DNA from: Marsupella aquatica
Lineage: Eukaryota > Plantae > Marchantiophyta
DNA length: 64,000 bases
Reading direction: 5' to 3'
NCBI GenBank assembly: GCA_973895155.1
Contig: OZ316899.1
Location: forward strand, 2,317,573-2,381,572
The position numbers and the translations under genes were made by a program. The notes beneath the pieces were generated by a model. It was given only the letters and a program-made list of their open reading frames with translations, was not told the DNA's origin and ran no database searches. Below are positions 29,515 through 56,691 of the stretch, one piece after another. Within the stretch, counting starts at the first letter, position 1. Each line of letters starts with the position of its first letter.

Positions 29515-30992
29515 TGCAAGTCGCAGAACTTGACTACCTTAACACTTAGCTCCGGCGTTGCTGACTCCGACGCCAAGCTCCCTTATGGTCCAGGCCCGGA
29601 TAGGCCATCCGGGGAGGACTTAGCATGGGGAGACTTGTGCGCAACGAGACGTGGCGCTAGCAAAGGCAAGGAGCCAAGCTGGTGACACACACTAAGAACT
29701 TGGACTAGCTGAGAGCTGCTCGGGTCAAGGGGAAATGGGCCGGGCTCAAGGATGACCGTCCGGGCCTCCGGATGGACTTTGAGTTCTGAGGGCTTGGGAG
29801 TGAGCTCCTCTTGGGCCCAAAGCCAATGGAGTTGACGCCATAGACAACGGACGCTTGGGGCGCAAGTTATGGCCCGATCCGGTTTGGGCCGATCGGGGGG
29901 CCCCAAGCGATGATGAGACCTGAGGACCTAGGCATGAGCACTGGGTCAGCCCAATCACAACGGGCTAAGGCACTCCGCTTGCGGATGCCTAACGAGAAAG
30001 TTAGGGGCGTTGCCAGTTGGTGGCGCGTCCATTATGCGCGATAGGATCCGGGTTGGGGGCCAAATATTTAGGGACCAAAGCTGGTCCGGGGGTGGCAGGT
30101 CTCCAGAAGCATATATGAGGGGAGTGGTGTCTCCCTGGGGGTAAGGGGGGGCCGAAGTCGTGAGCCGCGACAGTCGTGACACTATGGAAAATTGTCAAAT
30201 GGAAATAGCAATATCTTCCCAATGGGAAGTCCGTTGGAGGACTTCTTAGGTGCGTGGGAAAGCTCTCAACAAGGGATACGCCCTCCTGAGCTCAACTGGG
30301 TCTAGGGGCACCATGGGTTCTTGGGGTTTGTTGGGTGTTAACTCGCCCGCTTGCCAAATCCTGCCAAACAGCATCCAAGCCGCGTTTAGTCTCCCAAGGG
30401 AGCTTGCGTTGGGGAGGCAAGGCCAAGTAGGTGTGGAGGTTGAGTTCCAAGAGGGTTTGGCCCCTAGACCATCAGTGAGGAAAATCGGGAGTTGGTTGCT
30501 AGAGTCGGGGCCATTCTGGTCCCGACGTGTTGGGAGAAGCTTTAGGACAAGCTACGCTAATTGGGCCATGAGCATGTCCTGGGGTCAAGGCGGTCAGTTG
30601 GTGATGGATAGGTCAGTTGGCCGTGCCCAAGGAAGGAGCTGTTCTGGATGAACAGTGGACGTGGGTTCTGGTTCTGGCTTATGGCATCGGGAGGACCTAT
30701 CGCTAACCTATTTACCAATGTCTATTGAGCTTGAGTTAGGATGCTAGACTTGGTGAGTTCTAGATCTTGAAGGGTTACTTACCGAGGTGCTTGGTTGCTT
30801 GTGCAGACAATGAGGACCGTTGAGTAGCGGTCGTGTTGGAGAGCAAGTGCGGCTATGTATGGGAGGGGCCGCTGGCGGTGCAAGGGGCACTAGGGGGCTT
30901 GCTCAAGGTATTCCGTGGAGGCATTTGGGCACCAAGGGCACTTAGGCGTGAGTGCTGGGATTGGTGAGGGCGCTGGGTGGCTAGGTCCACCA
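29515..30992 (+). repeat. chromovirus 3' LTR (~1.48 kb)
   Basis: TG start after the PPT, TATA-like CATATATG at ~30110, and a 3' part matching 12280-12767 that ends GGTCCACCA. Confidence 0.82.
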
Positions 30993-38528: not shown

Positions 38529-41303
38529 GTAGTTCTCGGTACCTTAGCTCACAACCTGGTCCAAAAGTTTAGTCAGGACCTGTCAGGATATATTGGGCAA
38601 CAAGTTGCTACTTACTTCCCACCGGCCTTTTTTATGGTAGACCATCACATGTAGTATCATATTAGGGACATAAATTAACACTTAAGGTCCAAAACACGGT
38701 ATTCGATCCCATGGAAGAACATGTAAGGAATGATTTTCTATTGTTTAACACTTATGAATGACTAAGGTAACAAAAACACATATTTGAGCCTTTTACTATG
38801 GTTGCTCAGCAAGGCATAGATTTGAATGTTTGCTTAACATTGTAAATAAAATAATAAAATGGAATCAATTAACAAAACACAATGAAAATTTTGAGGTATG
38901 GTGAGGGAGTTAAGAAACAACCAAGGTCACTCCTCAACATAACTTCATTTGATGTGATTTAGGTGGTATATCCGTAAGAGCATTTTTGGAAAGGATTACG
39001 GTACTAGGATGATCACTAAAATGCCGTCAACATGTCTCAACTTTTCCTTCCAAGGTACTTAGTGGAGACTAGTAATCAGTCATTTCTGTATCCAATCGGT
39101 ACTTTGTGTCACGAACAAGAGACACCATCATCATCAAATTTGAAGTCATAAGTCATTGGAAATTAATCTTCCTTAGCATCCCATGCTCAAGCAAGGTCAT
39201 GCCAACAACTATGCATCAAGAACTTTTAGAATTATGTAGATCTCACCAATTAAGGAATCTACTTCTACACATTCCAAAGATTTGACATCAGTCTTACAAA
39301 GTTTTACTTCTTTGCTTTGCATTTTGAAATATCCAAATGCAAGGAAGGGAGAAGAAATTCTTTGCATTAAGTCACTCTGAAGCCCCTTGTGCTGCAATCT
39401 GCAACAACAGGTTTACATAATTTAGCTTTTAACTACATTGCCACTAAAGATGTGGCAAATTACAATACTGCCACTATTTTTAATATATATATAATATTGC
39501 CACCCTTTTCGTATGTGGTTCCTTGGGACTACTCGAGTTAACCCACGGTTGATATATCTCACCCTCATAGGCTGAATAATCCGTCAGGTCTGTTAATGGT
39601 GAAGTTTTCGTCCAATGTTCAGCCAGACTCTCCCTCCCGGAGTGCGCAAGACTGTTGTTCATGCATAGTCTGCAGTTTGGCAAGACATTTCAACACAGCA
39701 TAGAAATTAGTGGGAATCACCCTAGCAGACTTCGAATAAGCATGGCTGCAAGCAGAATGTTCATGGTCGGGTTGGAATGAAGGATGAGTGCAAAGTCACT
39801 ACGCACAGGCCCTGAGTGTCATCGCCAGCTGTTTTAGTCCCGGGATTTAGTAATGATGCTTCAATCCTTCTTGCTGCCTTGCAATCGCACCCTAGAGAAC
39901 AAAAAATGTGTCTACATTTTGCTCTGTCAAAAATGCTGCTGACTAGCTAAATCGCACATTCATCACGTGTTTAGTGGAAGGAAGCAGGCCAAAGTGGTTA
40001 GGCGAGTGAAGTTTAGTGATCGCGAGCTGAAGATGGATCATAGTGAGGACACAGATACCTGCAGTTGCATTTGAAGCCGTTATGAGAAAATTGGCTATGC
40101 CCTGGATGTCTTCAAGGCTAAGGTATTAAACTATCCCGTACTATAATGGCATTGATGCAAGGTCTTTGGTAGGTCCCTTCTCGATAGGCAATCTTAGTGT
40201 TTCAGTACGTAGGCAACATTCACATTCCAACATCAAAACTAATATTGTCGACACGAACACTACATGAGTTCAGTTCCGGCCTTCTTCAGTCTGATTGGAA
40301 GCCTTTGTCTTTTGCGGAAGTGGGAACGGAAGCATTACCCCAGCACTCTATTGCACACAAAAGTTGACTTGGAAATGTTTTCAGTCATTTCCACAGCTCA
40401 ACATCGACTCTGCTAGTGTACCTATCTCAACTTAGTACCCCTTAAATTCAGTTCCCTGACTTTGGAGATTGAGTTGGGAGATTCCTTGCTCCGATAATGT
40501 TCTATACACTGAGGACATCTGTTTGAGCATTTTATCTTTCCTATCAGATTTCTCAAGGCATCAGTTTATTATCACTAGTACATTTTTGCTCATTTTCCGA
40601 TGCTCCCGCTGAAACATGAAACAGGCGTCCGATGGCCGGAGTTACGCAAACTTTTGTTTACAAAAGTATCGGAACTTGCGATCCCCACAGCTTCGGAAAC
40701 CCTTTGTCTGATTCCCAAAACATCGGACATCATTTGCGATACTCCTAATATAGGAACATATCCGATGTCTTGACTATCGGACCCCTCTTCTAAAAATTGT
40801 TACTAAGTTTCCGATCCCTGAAGTATCGCATTCAATGTCCAATTTAGTAAAGAACGGAAATATTGCGATGAAAAATGTATTGCTTAGTGCTTCCGATGGG
40901 TTGGGTATCGCAAATGTTTTCCAAAGTAGTGTTTATCACAAATAATTCTGATGCTACACGTATCGGAAATGGAGTCCGAAAGGGTTTAAATCGGATAACT
41001 GTGGTTTGAGGTCAAGATTTGAACAAGGAGGTCTTCCGATGGGCTTCCGTTGTTTTAAGCATGGGAAATGGTATCGGGAATAAATGGACGTGACTCAAAT
41101 GCATATATTACTTAGGTATTGCAATTTGGATTGTGTCAAGGGACTATATACAGCTGTATCCAAAATTATATCCAACCAATGAATCTTTGGGCACGTGTGA
41201 AATGACATGACAAAATGTATATACTATCCATGAAGATAAAACATATAGGGGTTTTACCTAGGTCGCATCTATTGTAATGAGGGGTCCAAATCCTCTACTA
41301 CAA

Positions 41304-44300
41304 CTACACTTGGCTTGTCTTGAACAATGGATCATGAGCGAGGGATGTAAGGCATAACAATAGACCACTCTGGGTCATTTGGATAAGGAAGATAGAAAGA
41401 TTGCTCCAAATGATGGGAAATGCAAATGGATCTGAGGTTCTCCAATTGGAACTAATGACACTAGTTGCACTGGTCTTCAATCGTGTTAACCCACATGCAT
41501 CTTCCTCACAGGTCCGATTATGGCCAACAAGATTCATCCGAAACCATTTGCACTTGAACACCACCTCCTCCAAGGTTGTATGGGCATGATAATTTACGAT
41601 AAGAATCTCCACTATCTTCCCATAGTGGGCCACAGTTGAACGTATTGGATTTCGGTCAGAAGTGCTACTTTGTGACTCTTGGGTGAACCACCCCATCACC
41701 CCACAATCTCGTGTTGCTGCTCTCTTCATATCAAGATGTTGGATTCAAAAATGCCTCCCCTTTGACCACATGGCTGTTTGAGTCGTGACCGTGAGTAATG
41801 GACCATGAACAAGGGTGCGCATGTCATTGGTGACCTTCGGAAAGTGCAAAACACTCTCACCCTGACCCAACAAGGCATCAATCTCTGTCAACTTCTCCTT
41901 CATATATGGGAGAAACTTGGGGAAGAGGCGTGGCCGACGACTATTACTCTTCTCCTCCTCATAAAATGCAGTCCACTCCCTTGCAATCTCTGGTGAGTTA
42001 TACAACATGAATGTGGTGAGTTGCAGACGTTCAGCAGAGCCTAGTAGTCGTTCTCCCTTTGCTCCAGTGAGTTTATCCTCCTCATAATCTGCCTCTCGTG
42101 CTGACTCATCTATCCAAACCCCTTGGAGCATTTGGATCAAGTGCTCGATCAAGTGTAGCCACAATGTTCGTACAATAGAACATACTCTCTGCTCCAAGGT
42201 GACGTTCGGCAATGCTACCTTCCACCCTAGCACGGTTTGATACATATGATTTCATGACTCCCATGAATCGCTCTACCCAATACATCCAACAACAATGTAC
42301 TGGGCCTGCAATGGCTACTTCACGCACTAGATGTACAAGAAAATGAACTTGACCATCAAAGAAGGAAGGAGGGAGTGCTCGCTCCAACTTGCACACAACC
42401 TCCACTCCAAATACCTCCATGGCAGCAATCTCTCCCTCGTTGACCTCCTTTTGACAAACCCATCTCAACAATCTACCCAATGACCAAAGTGCATCCCGAA
42501 GATCCTCGCTGCCCAATCCAATAAGAGCAACTGGAATAACGTGCTGCAATAGACGATGATAATCGTGGGTCTTCAAGAAAGTTGGCCATTTTGGAGAGTC
42601 ATCTCCACCAAATGCCTTGCAAAGATTGGCACCATACCCTGTAGGAAACCGCATTGACCCTATCCGCTTGCGAAACTCTATTCGCTCACTCCTTTTGAAA
42701 ACCCATGGGGGATGGATAGTAAGGGGAGGGTCAGGGTCCATAGATGGCCAAAAACCATGTAGGCCATGCATCCCCATCTCCTCACAACTCTCCCTCCAAT
42801 TGTTGTTTTTCTCTCCATATAGATGGCGGATCAATGACCTCCCAACATTCCCCTCAATATGCATAGGGTCCAATAGATGATTTATTGGCATGTGTTCCCA
42901 ATATGGAAGTTGTGCCAATGCAGACAAACGGGTCATGCCACATCTAGCCAAGGGTAATGGGTCATCTGGATCAGTCACCCTCTCCCATACCTCCTTCCAA
43001 TATATTGGGTCCTTTGGTAAAGGCTGAGGTCTTGTGTCTGGCTGGCCCTCATCCGTGTCATACAAAAATGGATCATACCTCCAGTCATGCCCCTCAGGAA
43101 GATACTTTGTGTGACCAATGTAAACTATCTTCCGCAGGGTGGTAGACTTTGGGCGCGCCACTCCCTCCAAGTCTGGTCCACAAGTCGGGCAAGCACGATA
43201 TCCAGAAGTTTGCAAGCCAGAAATATATCCAAACCCTTCACAAACAATGGTCACAAATTAAAACCCATTAAGTTTTGAAACCAAACCAAAGGGAACAAAA
43301 TAAACAGAATGATATATATATATATGGGTAGCTGCACAAGCCATACTTAATTTATAAAGAGTTGGGTACTTGGAAGATCATGCATGGTCCACATAAGAAT
43401 GGCTTTGAGCTGAAACTCACGGGGTAAGCCCCCTGCATGCACTCGACCATCATAGCAATCCACTCCCCCCCAAAGTTTTTGTAGCTCCTCAATCAACGAT
43501 TGCAAGTATACATCAATCTTCTTCACTTGCTTAGGGCCAGGAATAATCATAGATAGGAGCAAATGACCCTTCTTCATGGCCATCCATGGTGGGATGTTGT
43601 AGTTAGTGAGGACTACTGGCCATACAGAGTATGGTTTGGCCTTGCCAGCCAGTGCAAATGGGCTAATGCCGTCTGATGCCAAACCAAGGCAAACATGACG
43701 AGGGTCAGTCTTGAACTCACCCCAACGCTCTTCCACAAATCTGTTTGCAGGAGAGTCAACCATCATGCGCATGGTTGGATCCTGAGTAGTGTCTGAACGG
43801 TGTTGGGAATGCCATACCATATACTTAGCCAACTCTGCGCATCGAAACTGGTGACGCAAACGAGGAATAAGGGGAAAGTACCTCATAACCTCTTGAGGTA
43901 CTCTTCCTGTCAACATATCCTCACGATATCTTGGTGCGTTGCACATAGGACATGTAAGAGCATTTGAGTGCTCCTTCCTGAACAAAACACAATCATTCAC
44001 ACAAGCATGTATGACCTCATACTTGAGGCCTATGGACTTCAACACTTTCTTTGCCTCTTTCCATGATGCTGGCAAGTTGTTCCCCTCTGGTAACATACGA
44101 TCATGCAATGTCCTGAAAATATCATCAAGAAGCAAGTTGCTTGCTCCATGTCTTTGCTGCAAGTTCAGTAATAACATGATTGCTGAAAGACAAGATAATC
44201 TAGACCCCTCAAAAAGACGAGTCCATGCATGCTCTTGAGCCTCCTCCCACTGGTGCGAGTGTGGATTCCGTGAAGGAGTATGCCTATGAGGAGGAGGTAA

Positions 44301-44483
44301 GTCAATGTCCTCCCTGTCACCCGGGTCATGATCACCCCGGGGATCACCCTCATCTGCATCCATGAATTGGTGCATCAACTCATCCATAGCCCGGTCCTCA
44401 TCCACTCTTTCTTGGGTAGCATTAGGTAGTTCATGTGGAAGGTCCATATCCTCAAAAGGTTGACCCCCTTGCCTACCATCCAT
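41304..44483 (-). CDS. CACTA TnpD-type transposase (Transposase_21 with DUF4218- and DUF4216-like regions), spliced, probably partly frameshifted
   Basis: IHACVNDC, YFPLIPRL, DPRHVCLGLASDGISPF, WPVVLTNYNIPPW, MHDLP, CPTC, LDPMHIEGNV, KTHDYH, FFDGQVH..VHL...GPV...WMYWVERFM and YGKIVEI...FKCKWF. Confidence 0.93.
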
Positions 44484-44720
44484 GGCCTGAGGAGATGTTG
44501 TCGCACAGCTCGTGATAATACCTCAATATCTGGCTGAACAAATGCATTCTATCATACACAAAAGAAAACAATGAGAATGATATAAGTCCAGGTCTCTCAA
44601 CCAACAATTGAGACATCCATATATGAATGAGTCAAAAGACTCCATAGCTCTTGAAACCAATTAGAGAATGACTCAAATAATATTTTTATAAAAGTGAACA
44701 TATACACATGTTTGTATGTG

Positions 44721-45623
44721 CTATGAAGGACGACCACGTATGGCCATCTTAGGCGCGTTCCAATCATAGTCACAAAAGAGTTCCTCACCAGCCCTAATAG
44801 TCCTAATGGCTATAGTCATAACATGGTCATCCATATGCTTGACATAGTAAGGTGGTGGCGGTGCCCCCAAAATCTGAACCCACTCTACATTTGGTTGAAG
44901 TCCTCGTCCTCTCCCTTTGGTACTATTGATATACCCAGCAATGTTATCACATCGCATAGGATCACCATCAATCATCCTACAATGCCAAGGCCTCTTGAGG
45001 ACCTCATCCGGATCAAAATCCATTTGCAATGCATACACTCCCCATGATGGTTGTTGCCGCAAAATAATGTTCCAATTCTTGGCAGTGTATATAGGGCCAA
45101 TGTAAGGAAATAAGTGTTCCCCATCATAACCTCTTCGCCATGGCTTTGGATGGACCACAATGTCCTCCAAAGCAAATAACCCAAATCCTACATCAACACC
45201 AAGCGAAGATGACTGCACTATCCAATGACGGCCCCATATCTCTATAGGGGCATTAGTGGGTATGCCTTGAGGGATTTTGAATATCTCAGACGAGAAGTCC
45301 TTCACAAGAGGCAACGCCTTTCCAGTGAGATATGAAAATCCCAACCTACCCTCCACTACCACATAACCCTCACCTGGCTTCATCATAGGCGGACCTACCA
45401 AGTTTGGGTCTTGAGACTCACGAGTGCCCAATGGTTTGTAATGTCTCCTATGCCTATGGGAGCGTGGGCGGGTGCGTAAAACCCTAGATGGAGGTACCTC
45501 CAGGTCACCTTGCTCAATGTCCTCCACCCTTGCTACAGGTACACTCCCGCCCTCACCATTGGGGCGCGGGGCAGGAGGAGGGGGTGTAGATGTTGATGCA
45601 AGCATCCGTCTTGCACTAGCCAT
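44721..45623 (-). CDS. SET-domain protein (putative lysine methyltransferase) carried by the CACTA element
   Basis: GFGLFALEDI ... FPYIGPIY ... YALQM ... MIDGDP..DNIAGYINS ... PNV ... AIRTIRAGEELFCDY. All SET blocks are in order in an intact 300-aa ORF; there is no post-SET Cys cluster. Confidence 0.9.
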   Translation of the reverse strand: MASARRMLASTSTPPPPAPRPNGEGGSVPVARVEDIEQGDLEVPPSRVLRTRPRSHRHRRHYKPLGTRESQDPNLVGPPMMKPGEGYVVVEGRLGFSYLTGKALPLVKDFSSEIFKIPQGIPTNAPIEIWGRHWIVQSSSLGVDVGFGLFALEDIVVHPKPWRRGYDGEHLFPYIGPIYTAKNWNIILRQQPSWGVYALQMDFDPDEVLKRPWHCRMIDGDPMRCDNIAGYINSTKGRGRGLQPNVEWVQILGAPPPPYYVKHMDDHVMTIAIRTIRAGEELFCDYDWNAPKMAIRGRPS

Positions 45624-45779
45624 AGCTCTTTAGAGATCAATGGAGGAGGGGGCCTACGGGGCACCTATTCATTCAAAAAAAATCCAAAATTAATAAATAT
45701 ATGATGATAGTGGCCATGATTGTAAGTGGAAAATTATGTTTCCTTCAAAATGTGTGGGGTGAGAGTATGGGGTGCATAC

Positions 45780-46018
45780 CTGGCGAGCTGAATGTCCTGG
45801 TAAATCAGTTGGTGTTGCCCATAATTCTCAATATGCTCAATACACTCCCAAGCTTGACGAACCACCATTCCCTTACATCGCACACACCAACATGGAATGG
45901 GGCCTAGAGGAGGAGGAGGATGATGCGGCCTCGGAGGGGGGGGGGGGGGAGGAATGTCCCCCTCAGAAGATGATGAGTCTGAGTCAGAATCTGACTCGGA
46001 ACTCCCAGAATTTGACAT
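45780..46018 (-). CDS. 5' exon with a CACTA transposase-associated-domain-like motif
   Basis: IPCWCVRCKG...WECIEHIENYG resembles CPC..C.......HL...G. An acceptor AG lies just before the ATG (46018) and a donor AG|GTATG at 45780/45779. Confidence 0.6.
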
Positions 46019-46950
46019 CTGCCCATCAATGTGAAAATGAATCACATGTCAAAAATCTTTCCCACCCATATTAAGTACCCTAAATACAATATGTCAAGAT
46101 TGGAACCTAGTTTACACTAAGCAAATAATTAAAAATAATGACTGTGCATCTTACCTAAATGATATCCGCGCTGAACAATGCCTACTAGGATCTTGGCCTT
46201 AGAATATATGCTAAGACAATATCCAAAATGTCTGCACAATTAAAGGAATACCATCAGAATTTATCTATACATATGTCCCCATAGAATCATATCCACTATA
46301 TATTGTGGCCATCAATGAAAAAAGTTTAGCCAAATATATACTTAAAGTGCTCACCTCCAAATGATAAAGGGAGTACATCATACCTTTCGGATGCACGGCC
46401 TATCGCGATGCATAATGCATTGCAAAAATGCACCTACAAAAATACAAACAAAGAGAACGACCCAACCCTCCGCAAAAAAATACTGCACAATACACGCACA
46501 TGAGGTTAACTTTGTTTGGCCCCCAAAATTAAATCCACATACAAGGTGGAAAAATTTGTCAAAACTTTTAATGTGAGTGGATCAATGATCATACCATTCA
46601 ACCCCAAAAGTATGTTGTCATAAGGGGGACATTACCGCACCTATAACCGACTTTTATTCAAGAACCCCACCGCCCAAACAAAATCCGGCTACTCAACCAG
46701 GCCTACAATTACAATGCAAGTTTTCACATCAACTAAACTTACATTTCCTTACCACATCCCCAGCCCCCCCATTGACTAACTTATTATAAATCCATCCTTA
46801 AAGGCATAAAAAATAACGGACAAGCTAAGTCCAATCATATTGGAAGAGGGGTCCGATACTTTAAGCATCGCTATTTCCGATCCCGTTTTTGATAGTTGAA
46901 GTATCGGATGTTCCGATTCTTAAAAAGTCGGATGGAGGGCACAATAGGGT

Positions 46951-49866
46951 TTGGTACTTTTCCTGACTAAAGTACGAATGTCTTTGTATTGGGCTTGGTT
47001 TCGGATGCAACTTGGGAGGAGCTGCCGAGTGAACACAAAGCGGAGGAGCACGCATTGGAGGTTGAGGCTATGGAGGGGAATGGCACGGATGGGGGGGGGA
47101 GGAGACAAAGCAGCCAGGGTGGGTGGAGATGGAGCAGGGCCGTCGCAACAGATCTCGGACATTATGGCAGAGATTTTCAAGAGGCAAGCAGGCCTGTCTG
47201 CTGAAGCTGCGGCCATAGCAGCTCAATTGACCCAGGGCCTGATTGACGAATCCAGGCAATCTGCCATAAGTGAAGTAGAGAAGGCTTTCATGGAGAGGCT
47301 AGAGAAAGGAAAGGAGAAAAAAAGAAAGAGGAAGGAGGAGAGGAAAGGCAGGCCAGTGGAGGCCCTCTCACCACAAGAAAGAGAGAAGAGGCTTAGAAAG
47401 GAGGCTCGAGCTGCAGAGAGGGCAAGGATTGAGGAAGAGAGGCTATGAGCAGAGGAAAGGGCCAAACGGCCAAAATTGTTCATTAATAAGGGAGGAGCTC
47501 CGATGACAAAGAGCTACAATTTGTTCAGAAGTCAGCTAGGGCAGGTGTTGAGGGCAAATTTCAGCCCCTTAGACTACTGGGGAAGAAGAAAGAAGAGGAG
47601 AAATTTCAAGCAAGGGAGCAAGTGAAGGAGCGATTCTGTAATGGCTGTTTCCTGGATGATCGATGGCTGAATAAGAAGATCTCACGTTCACTTGCAGATA
47701 GACGTAATAATGTGAGAGAAAAGATGAGGAAGTACCTAGCAGATTGTAAGGAGGAGGCAGAGGTGATCAGGCAGAGAGATCCCCCAAATGAGATACCAGC
47801 TAATGCCTGGTCTGCTTGGATTGATGCTGAGCTACAGGTTCGTGCTTGGCAAGCGAGACGTCACTGGCAGGCTGAGCTCGATGAGGCAGAGAAGAGGGTC
47901 CTTTCAGGACAGACTATTGACATCCCCCTCCTGCAGCAAAACTTAATGGAATGGGAGGCCAAATTAGCACTGCTTGGAGACCCTCCACTTTACATTCAAA
48001 ATGCAATTGAGAGGGTGGAGAAGAGGCCTACAGTTACTCACCGAATGGGGCAGGGTGGAGCGCATTGTCTCAAAGCAGAGTTTGTGAGTCCTCTGCTCCC
48101 CTCCTCCTTGCTCGCCTCCTTGCTGAATTTGCACCTCGAAATTGGGTCCTCCCTCTCCCTGATCACCTCAGGCACAACCTTGGCTATGCCTGCATAAGTC
48201 CTCCCAGACCTCCCCTCTTATCCCTGTGCGTTTGTTATCAAGCATGTATCGCAAGTTTTGATGTGTCCTTATTTTTTTCTGTTTCCGATTCTATTCCGAT
48301 TGCTGAAGAGTCGGAAATGGAGTGGGACTCTCTCTTATGGGTTTTGGACGCAAGGCTTCCGATTATGGTCTGATTACCTGAGAATCGGACCCTGAATCGG
48401 ACCTTAGGTTTTGGGGTTTAGGGTGGAGGGGTCCGATTAGGGAAGCATCAGAAAATTCAAATTTTTGAATATTTGACTGTTTTAGGCCACGCCGGGGGGG
48501 TTTGCTTTTTTTAAGGAGTGTCGGGCTTAGGTTGTTGTTGCTTTTTGCGATAGTTAGGCCACGATAATAAGGGAGTATTTTATATAGGTAGAGTGGGTAG
48601 TGATACCCATGAGTTGAAAGGGATGTGGGGGTGTTAGGGAATTTTTCTAAGTAATGTGTGGGGCTAGGTAGGGATTATTATTCATTAAGTAATGTGGGGG
48701 ATCTGGTAGGGATTAACTTTTAAAATAATGTATTTCAAGTAATGGGGGGTTTCAATTTTATTCTCATTTGCTGGGGAGGGGGGTTAATTATTATCTTGAG
48801 TATGGTGCAGGAGTGAGAGCATGGACGCCCAATTTTGCCGCCTGAGAGAGAGTTGGCTAAGAAATTTGGAACGTGGGCTCTAAAGCTTCACATGCAGGAC
48901 GAGTTGGGGTCGGTAAGTATATGCACAATTGAAAACCATATTTCTAACCTTTGAATGCAACATGGTTATAATCACTCCCTTGTAGGTCATTTGCAACACT
49001 AACACTTGGGTTGATGGTTGCTTACATGTATGTAGGAGTCAAATGAGGAGTCGGAGGGTTTGGACTCAGCCGAGGAGGGTTCGGGGGCCTCAGATTCAGA
49101 GTCTGAGGCTGAGGCTGAGGAGGGGAGTGTGGCACCCACCCCTGTTCGCTTGATTGGCGGCGCATCCCGAGGGACTCAAGGTAGTCATTCCAGACGGAGG
49201 ACTGGTGGTGATGTAGGTGGCCGTAGAGCAGCAGGAGGTAGTGGGGGTACTACAGCTGCTGGAGGTGGTGTTGGGACAGGTGGTAGTGGGCGCCGAGGAG
49301 GTTTTGATCGATCTGCAGGTGCTGGTGGGCGGGGTAGTACTAGGGCCCATAGTGGTTCTCACAGGCCCAGGTCTGGTGGGGGGGTTGGTAGTGGGCCCCA
49401 TGGTGGTTCTCACCGCCATTCAGGGGTTGTTGGCGGGAATGGTTCTCGCCGTTCACGGGCTAGTGGTGGAGGGGCAAGTGGGGGTGGGAGCACTGCTCGT
49501 GGTCATTCAGGGGCCAACAGGGTGAGTGGGACTGCAGTTGGTGGCATTGGTGATGGGACTCCATCTCATCAGTCAGGGGCTAGTGGAGGTGCAGGGTCTC
49601 ACCACTCTGCAGCCCAAGGGGGTAGTGGAAGTGCATCATTTCATACTTGCTCCGATGCTAGGGGTGTTGCAGTGCCTTCTCATGACTTAGAAGGTGATGT
49701 TGGTGACGTTGGTACCGCGATAGCTCCAAGCACCACAGCTGCAACTGGATCTCATGCTGTCATTGATAGGGTCCTAGGGTTAGTGCCAGATGCCACTACC
49801 CGACCAGAGAGTTATCGCCCTTGTGCCAAGAAGAGGAAGGGACGACATGCACCAACATATGGATAG
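46951..49866 (+). CDS. divergently oriented multi-exon CACTA TnpA/Transposase_24-like gene (exons ~46951-47448, 47622-48090, 49060-49866)
   Basis: RRNNVREKM...PPNEIPANAWSAW...THRMGQGGAHCLKAEF|GT; Gly-rich last exon. The exon structure is tentative. Confidence 0.5.
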
Positions 49867-50956
49867 GCCAGGTAGCTTAGCATAGGACCATTTGTAGGTA
49901 GGCCGCGATGCCATGCAGGTTGAGATGGATTATACACTTGTACATGTAAGGGTTGTACTTTCCATGCTAGAGGAAGCCATCCTCTTTTGTATATATAATG
50001 GCAGGGGTTTTCCCCCTTTTGAGTCTCACTACCATTCTTGCTACCCATGCTCACTTCCATGCATCCCAACATTGTAACCCCCACACCCCCAAAATTAATA
50101 ATCAGAAATTTTACCCCATCAATTATCCGATACTCCTCCGATCTTAAAACTATCGAAATGTCCGATTCTCTAAAACTCGGAATTTGCCATCCCCAGAGAA
50201 TCGATCTTTCCGATACCCTCGGTTACGGTCTTTCCGATACTTCTACTAACGGTATTTCCGATATTTCTAACGATGGTATTTTTGATCCTCTTATTTACGG
50301 TCTTTGCGTAACCTTTTGGTATGCAATATGCGATATTCAGAGTTACCCAAATTTTGATTCTTTACGTATCATAAGTGTATTGGAAACACTCAGCTTTTGG
50401 GCCGCCTCCCCTCTTCCATTTACGATTTTATTAACATCGGATGGCTGTTTTTCCGTTATTGTCGAGTACGCAAAGTGCGTTAATTTTAGTATCGCAAACT
50501 CCAATTATCTTCCGATTGTCGTTATTCGATGGGTTGAGTATCGGAATTTGCGATACTTTTAGAGTCGGATGAGATGTTTTTCTTGGCAACATTTTACAAA
50601 GGGATCCGAAGGTGTTCGTATCGGAAATTGGCCTCATAATGTACTAGTGTATTTGCTCTGAAGTGCCTGGATTTTTTTATTTATTTTTTTCACCCCATTG
50701 CCTAGTATCTGGTATGCTCTCGACCCCACGCCTATCCATATATAGCCAGAAATTTTATCTTTCCTGTTTGAGCATATTCTCTGTGCACTGAGGACATCTG
50801 TTTCAGCATTTTTGTTATAGTTTTTTTTTGGGGGGGGGAGGGGACTACGCCAAAATGGATGCTTCGATCCCATCTGTTTATATAGGCCTGACTTGTGACA
50901 TCCTTTTTTTGTGTGTATGCAGAGGATAAATTTTTTGGGTGTAACATACTATAGTC

Positions 50957-55355: not shown

Positions 55356-56691
55356 AGCTTCATGGGAACTAGACCCTCAACCGCCGGCGCCGGCCTAGTC
55401 GACCCCATACCCGTACCCGCACCAACGCAGACTCAGGCTCAGGCTCAAGCTCAGCTTCAGTCTCAGTCTCAGCCTCAGCCTAGGCAACCCCCACCGCCGA
55501 TCGCCCCGCCAGTACAAGTATGCTCCGTCATCAATAGTGGTGGCCCTCCCACCACGTGCCCGTCCAAACTCGTTTCTCAGCCTTGAAACAAGTCGAACCT
55601 TGCACTAACACGGAATGTTGGGGCAAGTTCTCCCCGACTATACTCCTTGTCGTTAGCGACCCCTCCCATACAAAGCCGCACTTGCCCTCGTCAGCACAAC
55701 CGTCGCTCAACGGTCTTTGCTATCTGCACAAGCAACCAACCAACCGGTAAGAACTTGTCTTGATCTCGGAACTCCCAAGACCATTGTCTTGCCTCAAGCT
55801 CAACAGTCGTTAGTAAGTAGGTCAGCGGATAGAGCCTCCCAGGCCCACATGGCCTTGCCATAAGCTGAAACTAAGGTCGACATCACTGTTCGTCCAGAAC
55901 AGTCTATCTACTGGATGTCGCCCAAGATTCCCCACTTTCTACCCGTCAATGGCTGACCGCCCTGCCTCCAGGACATGCCCATGGCCCAAACTCAGTTTGT
56001 CACAAACTAGTAGTAACACGCCGGGACCATTCAGTTTCTAGATCTTAGCCACCTCTCTGCGAAACCGGGTTCCGCTCAACCTCTCACCATGCATCGGGAC
56101 CAGATCTCAATGGCAGCCCCCAGAGTCTACTTGGTTCTACCTCTCCAACATCAGGTCCCCGTGGGAACCAAATGCGGTTTGGTCACTGTTCGACTTCGGA
56201 TCGGCAAGAGGGACTCCCCCCATTGCAAGCCTCAAAACCAAAATCATCCAATGCACAATCAGAGAGCACCATGAGGTAGCTTTCTTCATTAGATTTCCAA
56301 CAAGCCCAAGAACTCCTCCAACGGAGATCCGGTCGTCGAGTTATGTTTGTTTCCGCTTCAAAACTCGAAACGACGTATCTTCGTTGATCGCGACCAGCTC
56401 GAGCTCAAACTTGAGAGGACCACTCCCCTCATATATGCTTCTGGGGACCTGCCACCCCCGGACCAGATTTGGTCCCCTATCTTTGGCCCCCTACCCAAGG
56501 GTCCGTGGGCCCCGCCACTTAGCTCGAAACGAAGATAATTGAAAACCTTCTGTAACTTGGCCTCGAGCGCAAATTGTGGCATAAGGGGCTAAAAGTTACG
56601 GCCCTAACCCCGCTCTGGTCCAGGCAACCCCCCCGGTCCAGGCAACCCCCTCTTGGTCCATCGATGCGCGGCGACTCTAATCGAGTCTAAA

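Follow-up and report, generated by a model that had tools for sequence, protein, structure and literature searches.

Does a SET domain that lies inside a plant transposon belong to that transposon, and what might it do there? The question is raised by a stretch of the liverwort Marsupella aquatica (GenBank assembly GCA_973895155.1, contig OZ316899.1, positions 2,317,573 to 2,381,572 of the forward strand), in which a first-pass annotation, made from the sequence alone, had reported an intact open reading frame (ORF) of 300 amino acids (aa) with a SET domain inside the transposase transcription unit of a CACTA element. This 64-kb stretch is here called the window; all positions follow its numbering (Table 1), and L001-L013 denote the loci fetched for relatives. 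Our analysis reveals that the SET domain is a gene of the element: a divergent SET protein is encoded in an extra coding exon within the transposase transcription unit of a lineage of liverwort CACTA/EnSpm transposons. As had been proposed for this locus, the SET gene behaves as part of its element, since it lies inside the terminal inverted repeats (TIRs), holds the same position in related loci, appears to evolve under purifying selection and has a predicted SET fold.

The element is a CACTA/EnSpm transposon, as is evident from its TIRs, target site duplication (TSD), Transposase_21 and DUF4218 domains and subterminal repeats. The 12-bp sequence CACTAGTACATT has exactly two copies in the 64 kb, which form an exact inverted pair at the ends of the element, and each is adjoined by the 3-bp TSD TAT that is expected of CACTA/EnSpm insertions. 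Nine copies of the octamer GTATCGGA are present in the window, where 0.82 would be expected, and all nine lie inside the element, at both of its ends and in a small internal cluster (46852-46908). On the minus strand, downstream of the SET frame, Pfam detects Transposase_21 at 43347-44483 and Transposase_21/DUF4218 at 42106-43254 (128.7 bits for PF02992 and 98.6 bits for PF13960), and the transposase shares about 28% identity with angiosperm CACTA transposases of about 1,100 aa. These Pfam positions, together with the motif of the first exon, agree with the earlier placement of the SET frame on the transposase strand between that exon and the Transposase_21 exon.

The ORF carries a real SET domain. 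It matches the Pfam SET profile (PF00856) with 33.6 bits (cut-off 22.4) over residues 146-286, which cover profile positions 1-104 of 105, and its motifs read GFGLFA, IDGDP..NIAGYINST and GEELFCDY. Cys-rich pre-SET and post-SET regions are absent, so that the description as a minimal SET domain is correct, and so is the observation that the NHS motif is altered. In an AlphaFold model computed with a 13-sequence alignment, residues 85-290 mostly have pLDDT values of 70-95, the first 80 residues are disordered, and a conserved, beta-rich extra region of about 45 residues precedes the SET core on its N-terminal side. Foldseek recovers the SET fold with a probability of 1.00, with LegAS4, MLL1, SETD8, NSD1 and EZH2 as top matches at about 20% identity and a TM score by target of about 0.6 against the minimal SET domains of MLL1 and SETD8; the structural check suggested for this ORF thus came out in its favour. 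The AlphaFold DB and viral structure libraries returned generic SET proteins only.

At the sequence level the protein stands well apart from studied SET enzymes. Searches of solved structures with both the protein and the family profile gave no significant match to a SET enzyme (profile E about 0.6), and in the profile search the GxG and EL..DY blocks alone align, to EZH1/2 and SETD8; among solved structures the protein is placed by structure comparison alone. The SET clade is therefore very divergent and is left without assignment to a substrate class. Assignment to a known lysine methyltransferase (KMT) subfamily by fold was also attempted and rejected, as LegAS4, MLL1, SETD8, NSD1, EZH and SUV39 score alike at about 20% identity. 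Among 38 family members the best-conserved blocks are GxGLFA, LFPY.G.VY, IDGDP.R..NIAGYINS, PNVEW and RTIRAG.EL...Y, which in known SET domains form the cofactor and catalytic sites. The Gly residues of GxG are invariant or nearly so, the Tyr of EL..DY is kept in at least 80% of the 38 members, and the NH motif reads AGYINS(T), with the Asn retained and the His replaced by Ser in every aligned member. Because of this replacement we do not file the SET protein as a proven enzyme.

The comparison with related loci carries most of the weight for regarding the SET domain as an element gene. A protein search yielded 12 relatives, and the DNA fetched around nine of them provided 13 loci, the closest relative being an annotated protein of Calypogeia fissa with 64% identity. 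In every locus with enough sequence, a zinc-finger exon, the SET domain, Transposase_21 and DUF4218 follow each other in this order on one strand, and a divergent second gene lies upstream in the relatives too, where the contig extends far enough. Identity to the window falls from 64% for the SET domain and 72% for the first transposase exon in L001 through 57% and 73% in L008, 52% and 58% in L002, and 49% and 55% in L007 to 46% and 55% in L005; in L012 and L013 the SET domain is 38-39% identical, with about 39-60% for the transposase, calculated per segment. SET identity (38-64%) thus drops in step with that of the first transposase exon, a pattern that fits a single old acquisition followed by co-divergence. 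The species named in this comparison represent both main liverwort classes, which suggests, without proving it, an ancient origin.

The SET exon has pairwise dN/dS ratios (NG86) of 0.15-0.34, the transposase exon of 0.10-0.15; these are rough values by this single method, with synonymous sites saturated and dS undefined in several pairs. They support purifying selection on the SET exon. With SET domains in 13 related loci beside a CACTA transposase, two of the outcomes that would have spoken against an element gene, a single copy and neutral evolution, are contradicted. In four sequencing runs the unitig depth of the element is very high and fragmented, an indication that the family is multi-copy.

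An exhaustive profile search of 1.84 billion representative sequences retrieved 133 clusters at E<=1e-3, of which about 20 were looked up for lengths and names. These are mostly fragments and liverwort gene models, several of which also contain Transposase_21, and the only species named among them are Riccia sorocarpa (Marchantiopsida) and C. fissa (Jungermanniopsida). A canonical host SET family was not found among the roughly 20 clusters examined. A one-off capture of a host gene was rejected because of the synteny, the selection and the lack of a close host relative among the clusters examined. A C. fissa protein of about 503 aa (P0072 / P0144) is a more distant member of the SET clade (E 1e-18); its N-terminal region is of another, Cys-rich type, and a transposase part is not recognisable in it. 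It could represent a domesticated copy or a member of another element family.

The copy in the window is dead. Comparison with contigs from the four sequencing runs and with the relatives reveals four frameshifting indels and one nonsense codon (Table 1), and the other copies in these runs are in frame at the positions that are shifted here. Where the 16 bases missing from the SET linker are present, the linker reads ...SKELWLDTFLASARRMLAS... and is collinear with the C. fissa protein and with P0002, P0008 and P0011; the ATG at 45623 overlaps Leu-Trp codons of this ancestral frame and is in frame with the SET domain only because of the copy-specific deletion. The ORF described as intact is indeed open and includes all SET blocks; the gene is not intact, and the 300-aa ORF is the open remnant of a longer, now broken one. 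The frameshift in exon 1 likewise accounts for the TGA which, as had been noticed, the splice from 45780 to 45664 meets in this copy. The nonsense codon in the transposase (TGA versus CGA in other copies) is a C-to-T change at a CpG, as would arise by deamination if the cytosine was methylated in a silenced copy.

How the SET exon is connected to the rest of the unit can be read by comparison of the relatives. In L001, L002, L005, L006 and L008 the GT donor of exon 1 follows a complete codon (phase 0), the last residues before it being ...SA(R/Q)Q or ...SS(G/R)Q. The SET frame opens right at the acceptor (a)atag/GTG, which is conserved in L001 and L008 and has an equivalent form in L002, and the TAG of this acceptor is the last in-frame stop ahead of the SET frame. 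In L011 the intron is absent, and zinc finger and SET domain constitute one continuous ORF of 423 aa; gene models that join exon 1 to the SET domain exist in C. fissa (P0001) and in Riccia (P0019). At the other end, each of the nine lineages examined has its SET stop 1-13 codons past the last conserved residues of the domain, and six of the nine have no phase-0 donor near or before this stop. An in-frame splice from SET to transposase was for this reason rejected as a conserved isoform. Of the SET-transposase fusion suggested in the first-pass annotation, the junction between the first transposase exon and the SET domain is therefore borne out by L011, P0001 and P0019, while a conserved in-frame link from SET to the catalytic part is not.

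The transposase frame opens, again in phase 0, right after a pyrimidine-rich acceptor (...tag). Ahead of the Met that could serve as start in the window and in L008 there are conserved codons, N(Q/A)FVQPD..VLSRA.RQH, and this Met is missing from L001; the transposase exon therefore cannot start a protein alone. The rest of the transposase coding region (41304-43245 in the window) is one continuous 648-aa ORF in L002. Angiosperm CACTA transposases, of about 1,100 aa, begin with the Transposase-associated domain PF13963, and alignment of the liverwort exon 1 profile with their N-termini by hhalign gives a probability of 86% and an E-value of 4.9e-6 over the C.C..C...H...G core.

From the conserved splice phase and this comparative anatomy, it is rather probable that a choice between alternative acceptors yields two proteins that have their targeting module in common. 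A single promoter and a single first exon, encoding the Transpos_assoc-like zinc-finger module that usually forms the N-terminus of CACTA transposases, would serve two alternative acceptors. Joined to the SET exon, with its terminal stop, exon 1 would give rise to a zinc-finger-SET fusion of about 400 aa; if the SET exon is skipped and exon 1 is joined to the transposase exons, the result would be a canonical transposase of about 1,100 aa. Both proteins would contain the targeting module and differ in their effector, a lysine methyltransferase or a DDE nuclease. The SET isoform would be recruited to the GTATCGGA-type repeats of its own element, at the two ends as well as at the internal promoter, and there would methylate a chromatin protein, most likely in order to counter host silencing of the element. 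This recruitment and methylation are a serious possibility, to which we give somewhat less than an even chance. The complete proposal, a mobile element in which the choice of an alternative 3' exon puts either a DDE nuclease or a lysine methyltransferase on one sequence-specific targeting module and so creates a self-addressed, possibly anti-silencing chromatin writer at its own ends and promoter, is put forward tentatively and is likewise given somewhat less than an even chance.

Several observations weigh against this proposal. Exon 1 scores 12.7-13.5 bits against the Pfam family Transpos_assoc (PF13963), below the cut-off of 27.7, although two members match it in register. The four runs in which element sequence was found behave like genomic DNA, with very high unitig depth and many variant short contigs, and contain no GT..AG joints, so that both splice choices are inferred. 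A direct junction of exon 1 and transposase was not found among the annotated or assembled liverwort proteins recovered, none of these hits having the zinc finger, and some Riccia models (P0058, P0075) instead join SET pieces to the transposase; we treat the latter as predictions, but further isoforms may exist. Catalysis is not assured, given that the His of the NH motif is Ser throughout the aligned family. Finally, the fold neighbours write H3K4, H3K9, H3K27, H3K36 and H4K20 methylation at similar scores, and the modelled structure gives no indication of the substrate or of the direction of the effect.

These points leave room for other explanations. A shared first exon with alternative effectors would fit a self-limiting repressor equally well: the SET isoform would compete for the binding sites of the element through the shared N-terminus and may lay H3K9, H3K27 or H4K20 methylation on the element's own copies, which would keep the copy number tolerable. 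The 66-kDa repressor of the P element, which shares its N-terminus with the transposase, is a precedent, and SUV39H1, EZH1/2 and KMT5A are among the structural neighbours. The H3K4 and H3K36 writers LegAS4, MLL1 and NSD1 score at least equally, however, and other transposon-borne chromatin factors (VANC, TET/JBP) are read as anti-silencing (PMC12730594); we consider a repressor unlikely. Alternatively, the substrate of the SET protein might not be a histone (the transposase itself or a host silencing factor, for example), or the protein might be a non-catalytic binding module. The NS in place of NH in all aligned members, the missing pre-SET and post-SET Cys regions and the divergence of the clade from solved SET enzymes (profile E about 0.6) all agree with this. 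On the other hand, the residues most strongly conserved are those of the classic blocks for S-adenosylmethionine (SAM) binding and catalysis, including the Tyr of EL..DY, which argues for retained catalysis. We consider this alternative quite unlikely.

Two further explanations were considered. If SET domain and transposase were independent neighbouring genes with their own promoters, exon 1 would belong to the SET gene alone. The ATG that the window and L008 have close to the beginning of the transposase exon would then be a true start, and the failure to find a spliced product of exon 1 and transposase would be expected. This is difficult to reconcile with a transposase frame that opens exactly at a conserved acceptor, with the conserved codons ahead of the Met and with the lack of that Met in L001; besides, canonical CACTA transposases need an N-terminal Transpos_assoc module, for which exon 1 is the only supplier in these elements. 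Independence of the two genes is accordingly judged quite improbable. CACTA elements are also known for capturing host fragments, and the SET gene of the window, broken at its 5' end, might pass for such passive cargo (a transduplicate or Pack-CACTA insert) with no function for the element. Yet its position and splice phase are constant across lineages down to 38% SET identity and in both main liverwort classes, its frame is open in every lineage examined, with the low dN/dS given above (0.15-0.34), and no close host SET relative is seen among the 1.84 billion representatives (about 20 of the 133 clusters at E<=1e-3 examined). We regard passive cargo as very improbable indeed, and prefer alternative splicing of a shared first exon.

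In maize, En/Spm produces TnpA and TnpD from one transcription unit by alternative splicing, and TnpA binds the subterminal repeats and influences the epigenetic state of the element. The liverwort element resembles it in its subterminal repeats, with a copy at the internal promoter, and presumably in making several proteins from one pre-mRNA. It differs from it in the alternative product, which in contrast to TnpA would be a SET domain with the N-terminus of the transposase.

That SET genes travel on transposons is already documented: they are found on HarbingerS and oomycete MuDR transposons, according to PMC12730594 (citing Kojima & Jurka 2014), and on Helitrons and the red-alga Plavaka element PAG2 (bioRxiv 10.1101/2025.02.11.637652). 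Like these, the present element carries an accessory SET gene inside a DNA transposon (their SET domains are compared here by description only), and Plavaka and EnSpm/CACTA are both members of the broad CMC(T) group. In contrast to these cases, the host is a canonical plant-type CACTA/EnSpm element, with Transposase_21, DUF4218, CACTA TIRs and a 3-bp TSD, and the named species with homologues are liverworts only. Furthermore, SET is here not a separate accessory gene: it is an exon of the transposase unit, fused to the N-terminal zinc-finger exon of the transposase. PAG2 additionally has a DNA methylase domain, of which there is none in the SET protein of the present element.

VANC of VANDAL elements and TET/JBP of KDZ/Plavaka elements are element-encoded factors thought to act on their own chromatin and thereby to escape silencing (PMC12730594). 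By analogy, the SET isoform may be another element-encoded candidate for such action, with a different chemistry: protein lysine methylation is predicted instead of DNA demethylation or oxidation. In the primate SET-mariner fusion SETMAR a SET domain and a transposase-derived DNA-binding module share one polypeptide (PMC9062482), as do the SET domain and the transposase-type module here. SETMAR is a single-copy domesticated host gene that arose when a transposon landed beside a host SET gene, whereas the present fusion is encoded by mobile, multi-copy elements. The compact core without Cys-rich pre-SET and post-SET regions recalls SETD8/KMT5A and viral SET proteins, and SETD8 and the SET proteins of giant viruses and phaeoviruses are among the best fold matches. 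Unlike them, at about 20% identity, the liverwort family has NS for NH and the extra beta-rich region of about 45 residues, and no family link was detected at the sequence level. In full-text searches of the literature, Repbase not being covered, we found no paper on a SET exon in bryophyte EnSpm/CACTA elements. SET genes on transposons are thus already known, and what is new is the host superfamily, the distribution in liverworts and SET as a putative alternative exon that would share the N-terminus of the transposase.

The first two ORF pieces of the divergent second gene (46951-47448 and 47622-48197) are conserved in L001, L008 and L012, and the third is a 268-aa ORF that is extremely rich in Gly, Ser and Arg. 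A Pfam search of the gene gave no match, and a protein-atlas search with its L012 counterpart provided a weak lead to Transposase_24 (TnpA-like); on this lead, the second gene may be the real counterpart of TnpA. In the spacer between the divergent genes, the subterminal motif (GTATCGGA / TCCGATAC) is present both in the window (46840-46910) and in the C. fissa element L001 (8739-8766), and there it may be a binding site linking the element ends to the promoter. Candidate ends of L001 are an inverted pair of ACTACTACAT 10.1 kb apart, of which the outermost base and the TSD lack a clean match.

On both sides of the window element, just beyond the TSD, lies a motif of about 27 nt (cactgaggacatctgttt[g/c]agcatttt) in nearly identical form (40507-40533 and 50786-50812), from which it seems that the CACTA element inserted into or beside another repeat. 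Farther out, three adjacent inverted-repeat pairs of 35-56 nt, with 77-91% complementarity (30561-30873 / 55655-55989), lie about 25 kb apart, with the CACTA element and neighbouring sequence between them. A larger element may end in these pairs, or they may be two oppositely oriented copies of another repeat.

Table 1. Parts of the Marsupella aquatica CACTA/EnSpm element and lesions of its window copy, in window numbering.
Feature	Position	Strand	Description
Whole CACTA/EnSpm element	40573..50649	-	10,077 bp; transposase unit on minus strand; exact TIRs and 3-bp TSD
Left TIR CACTAGTACATT	40573..40584	+	12 bp, exact; preceded by TSD TAT at 40570-40572
Left subterminal repeat zone	40600..41080	.	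GTATCGGA / TCGCAA-type motifs
Rest of transposase coding region	41304..43245	-	Transposase_21 C-part, DUF4218 and C-terminal part; from Pfam and relatives
Lesion	41745-41747		In-frame TGA, CGA in other copies; premature stop
Lesion	~42116-42118		1-base insertion; breaks a stretch that is a single ORF in L002
First transposase-specific exon	43360..44548	-	Transposase_21 N-part; opens after acceptor ...gatag at 44549; 3' end approximate
Lesion	44489/44490		1 base short, 59 nt into transposase exon; frame shift
SET exon	44721..45664	-	Linker, SET domain, stop at 44721-44723
300-aa SET ORF	44721..45623	-	Part of SET exon; Pfam SET PF00856
Lesion	45615/45616		16 bases short, between two GGCTAG repeats; SET linker
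Intron between exon 1 and SET exon	45665..45779	-	GT...AG
Exon 1	45780..46018	-	Acidic/Ser-rich and Pro-rich stretch, then zinc-finger-like core C-x-C-x2-C...H...G-x-H (Transpos_assoc-like); donor GT 45779-45778
Lesion	45807/45808		1 base short; frame of exon 1 shifts just after ...YGQHQ
Internal cluster of subterminal repeat motif	46840..46910	.	In the spacer of the divergent genes; putative binding site or bidirectional promoter
Second element gene, divergent	46951..49866	+	ORF pieces 46951-47448, 47622-48197, 49060-49866
Right subterminal repeat zone	50110..50630	.	Subterminal repeats
Right TIR CACTAGTACATT	50638..50649	-	Exact; followed by TSD TAT at 50650-50652

To our knowledge, transposons rarely encode chromatin enzymes, and the function of such enzymes has hardly ever been put to the test. 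The chromatin marks on liverwort transposons are unusual. The lineage described here offers a compact and directly testable case, in which a SET domain is physically coupled to the targeting domain of a transposase and is kept under selection in both liverwort classes. Public annotations list several of its members as host proteins, under names such as 'SET domain-containing protein' and 'unnamed protein product' (P0019, P0023, P0037, P0058 and P0075 in Riccia sorocarpa, P0001 in C. fissa). Several entries of this kind in Riccia and Calypogeia are transposon genes and not host chromatin regulators, and counts of SET-domain genes in liverworts are probably inflated by the SET-CACTA family. Should the SET isoform mark the element that encodes it, this would be a case of a DNA transposon editing histone marks at its own copies, and the isoform would constitute a natural, sequence-targeted histone writer.

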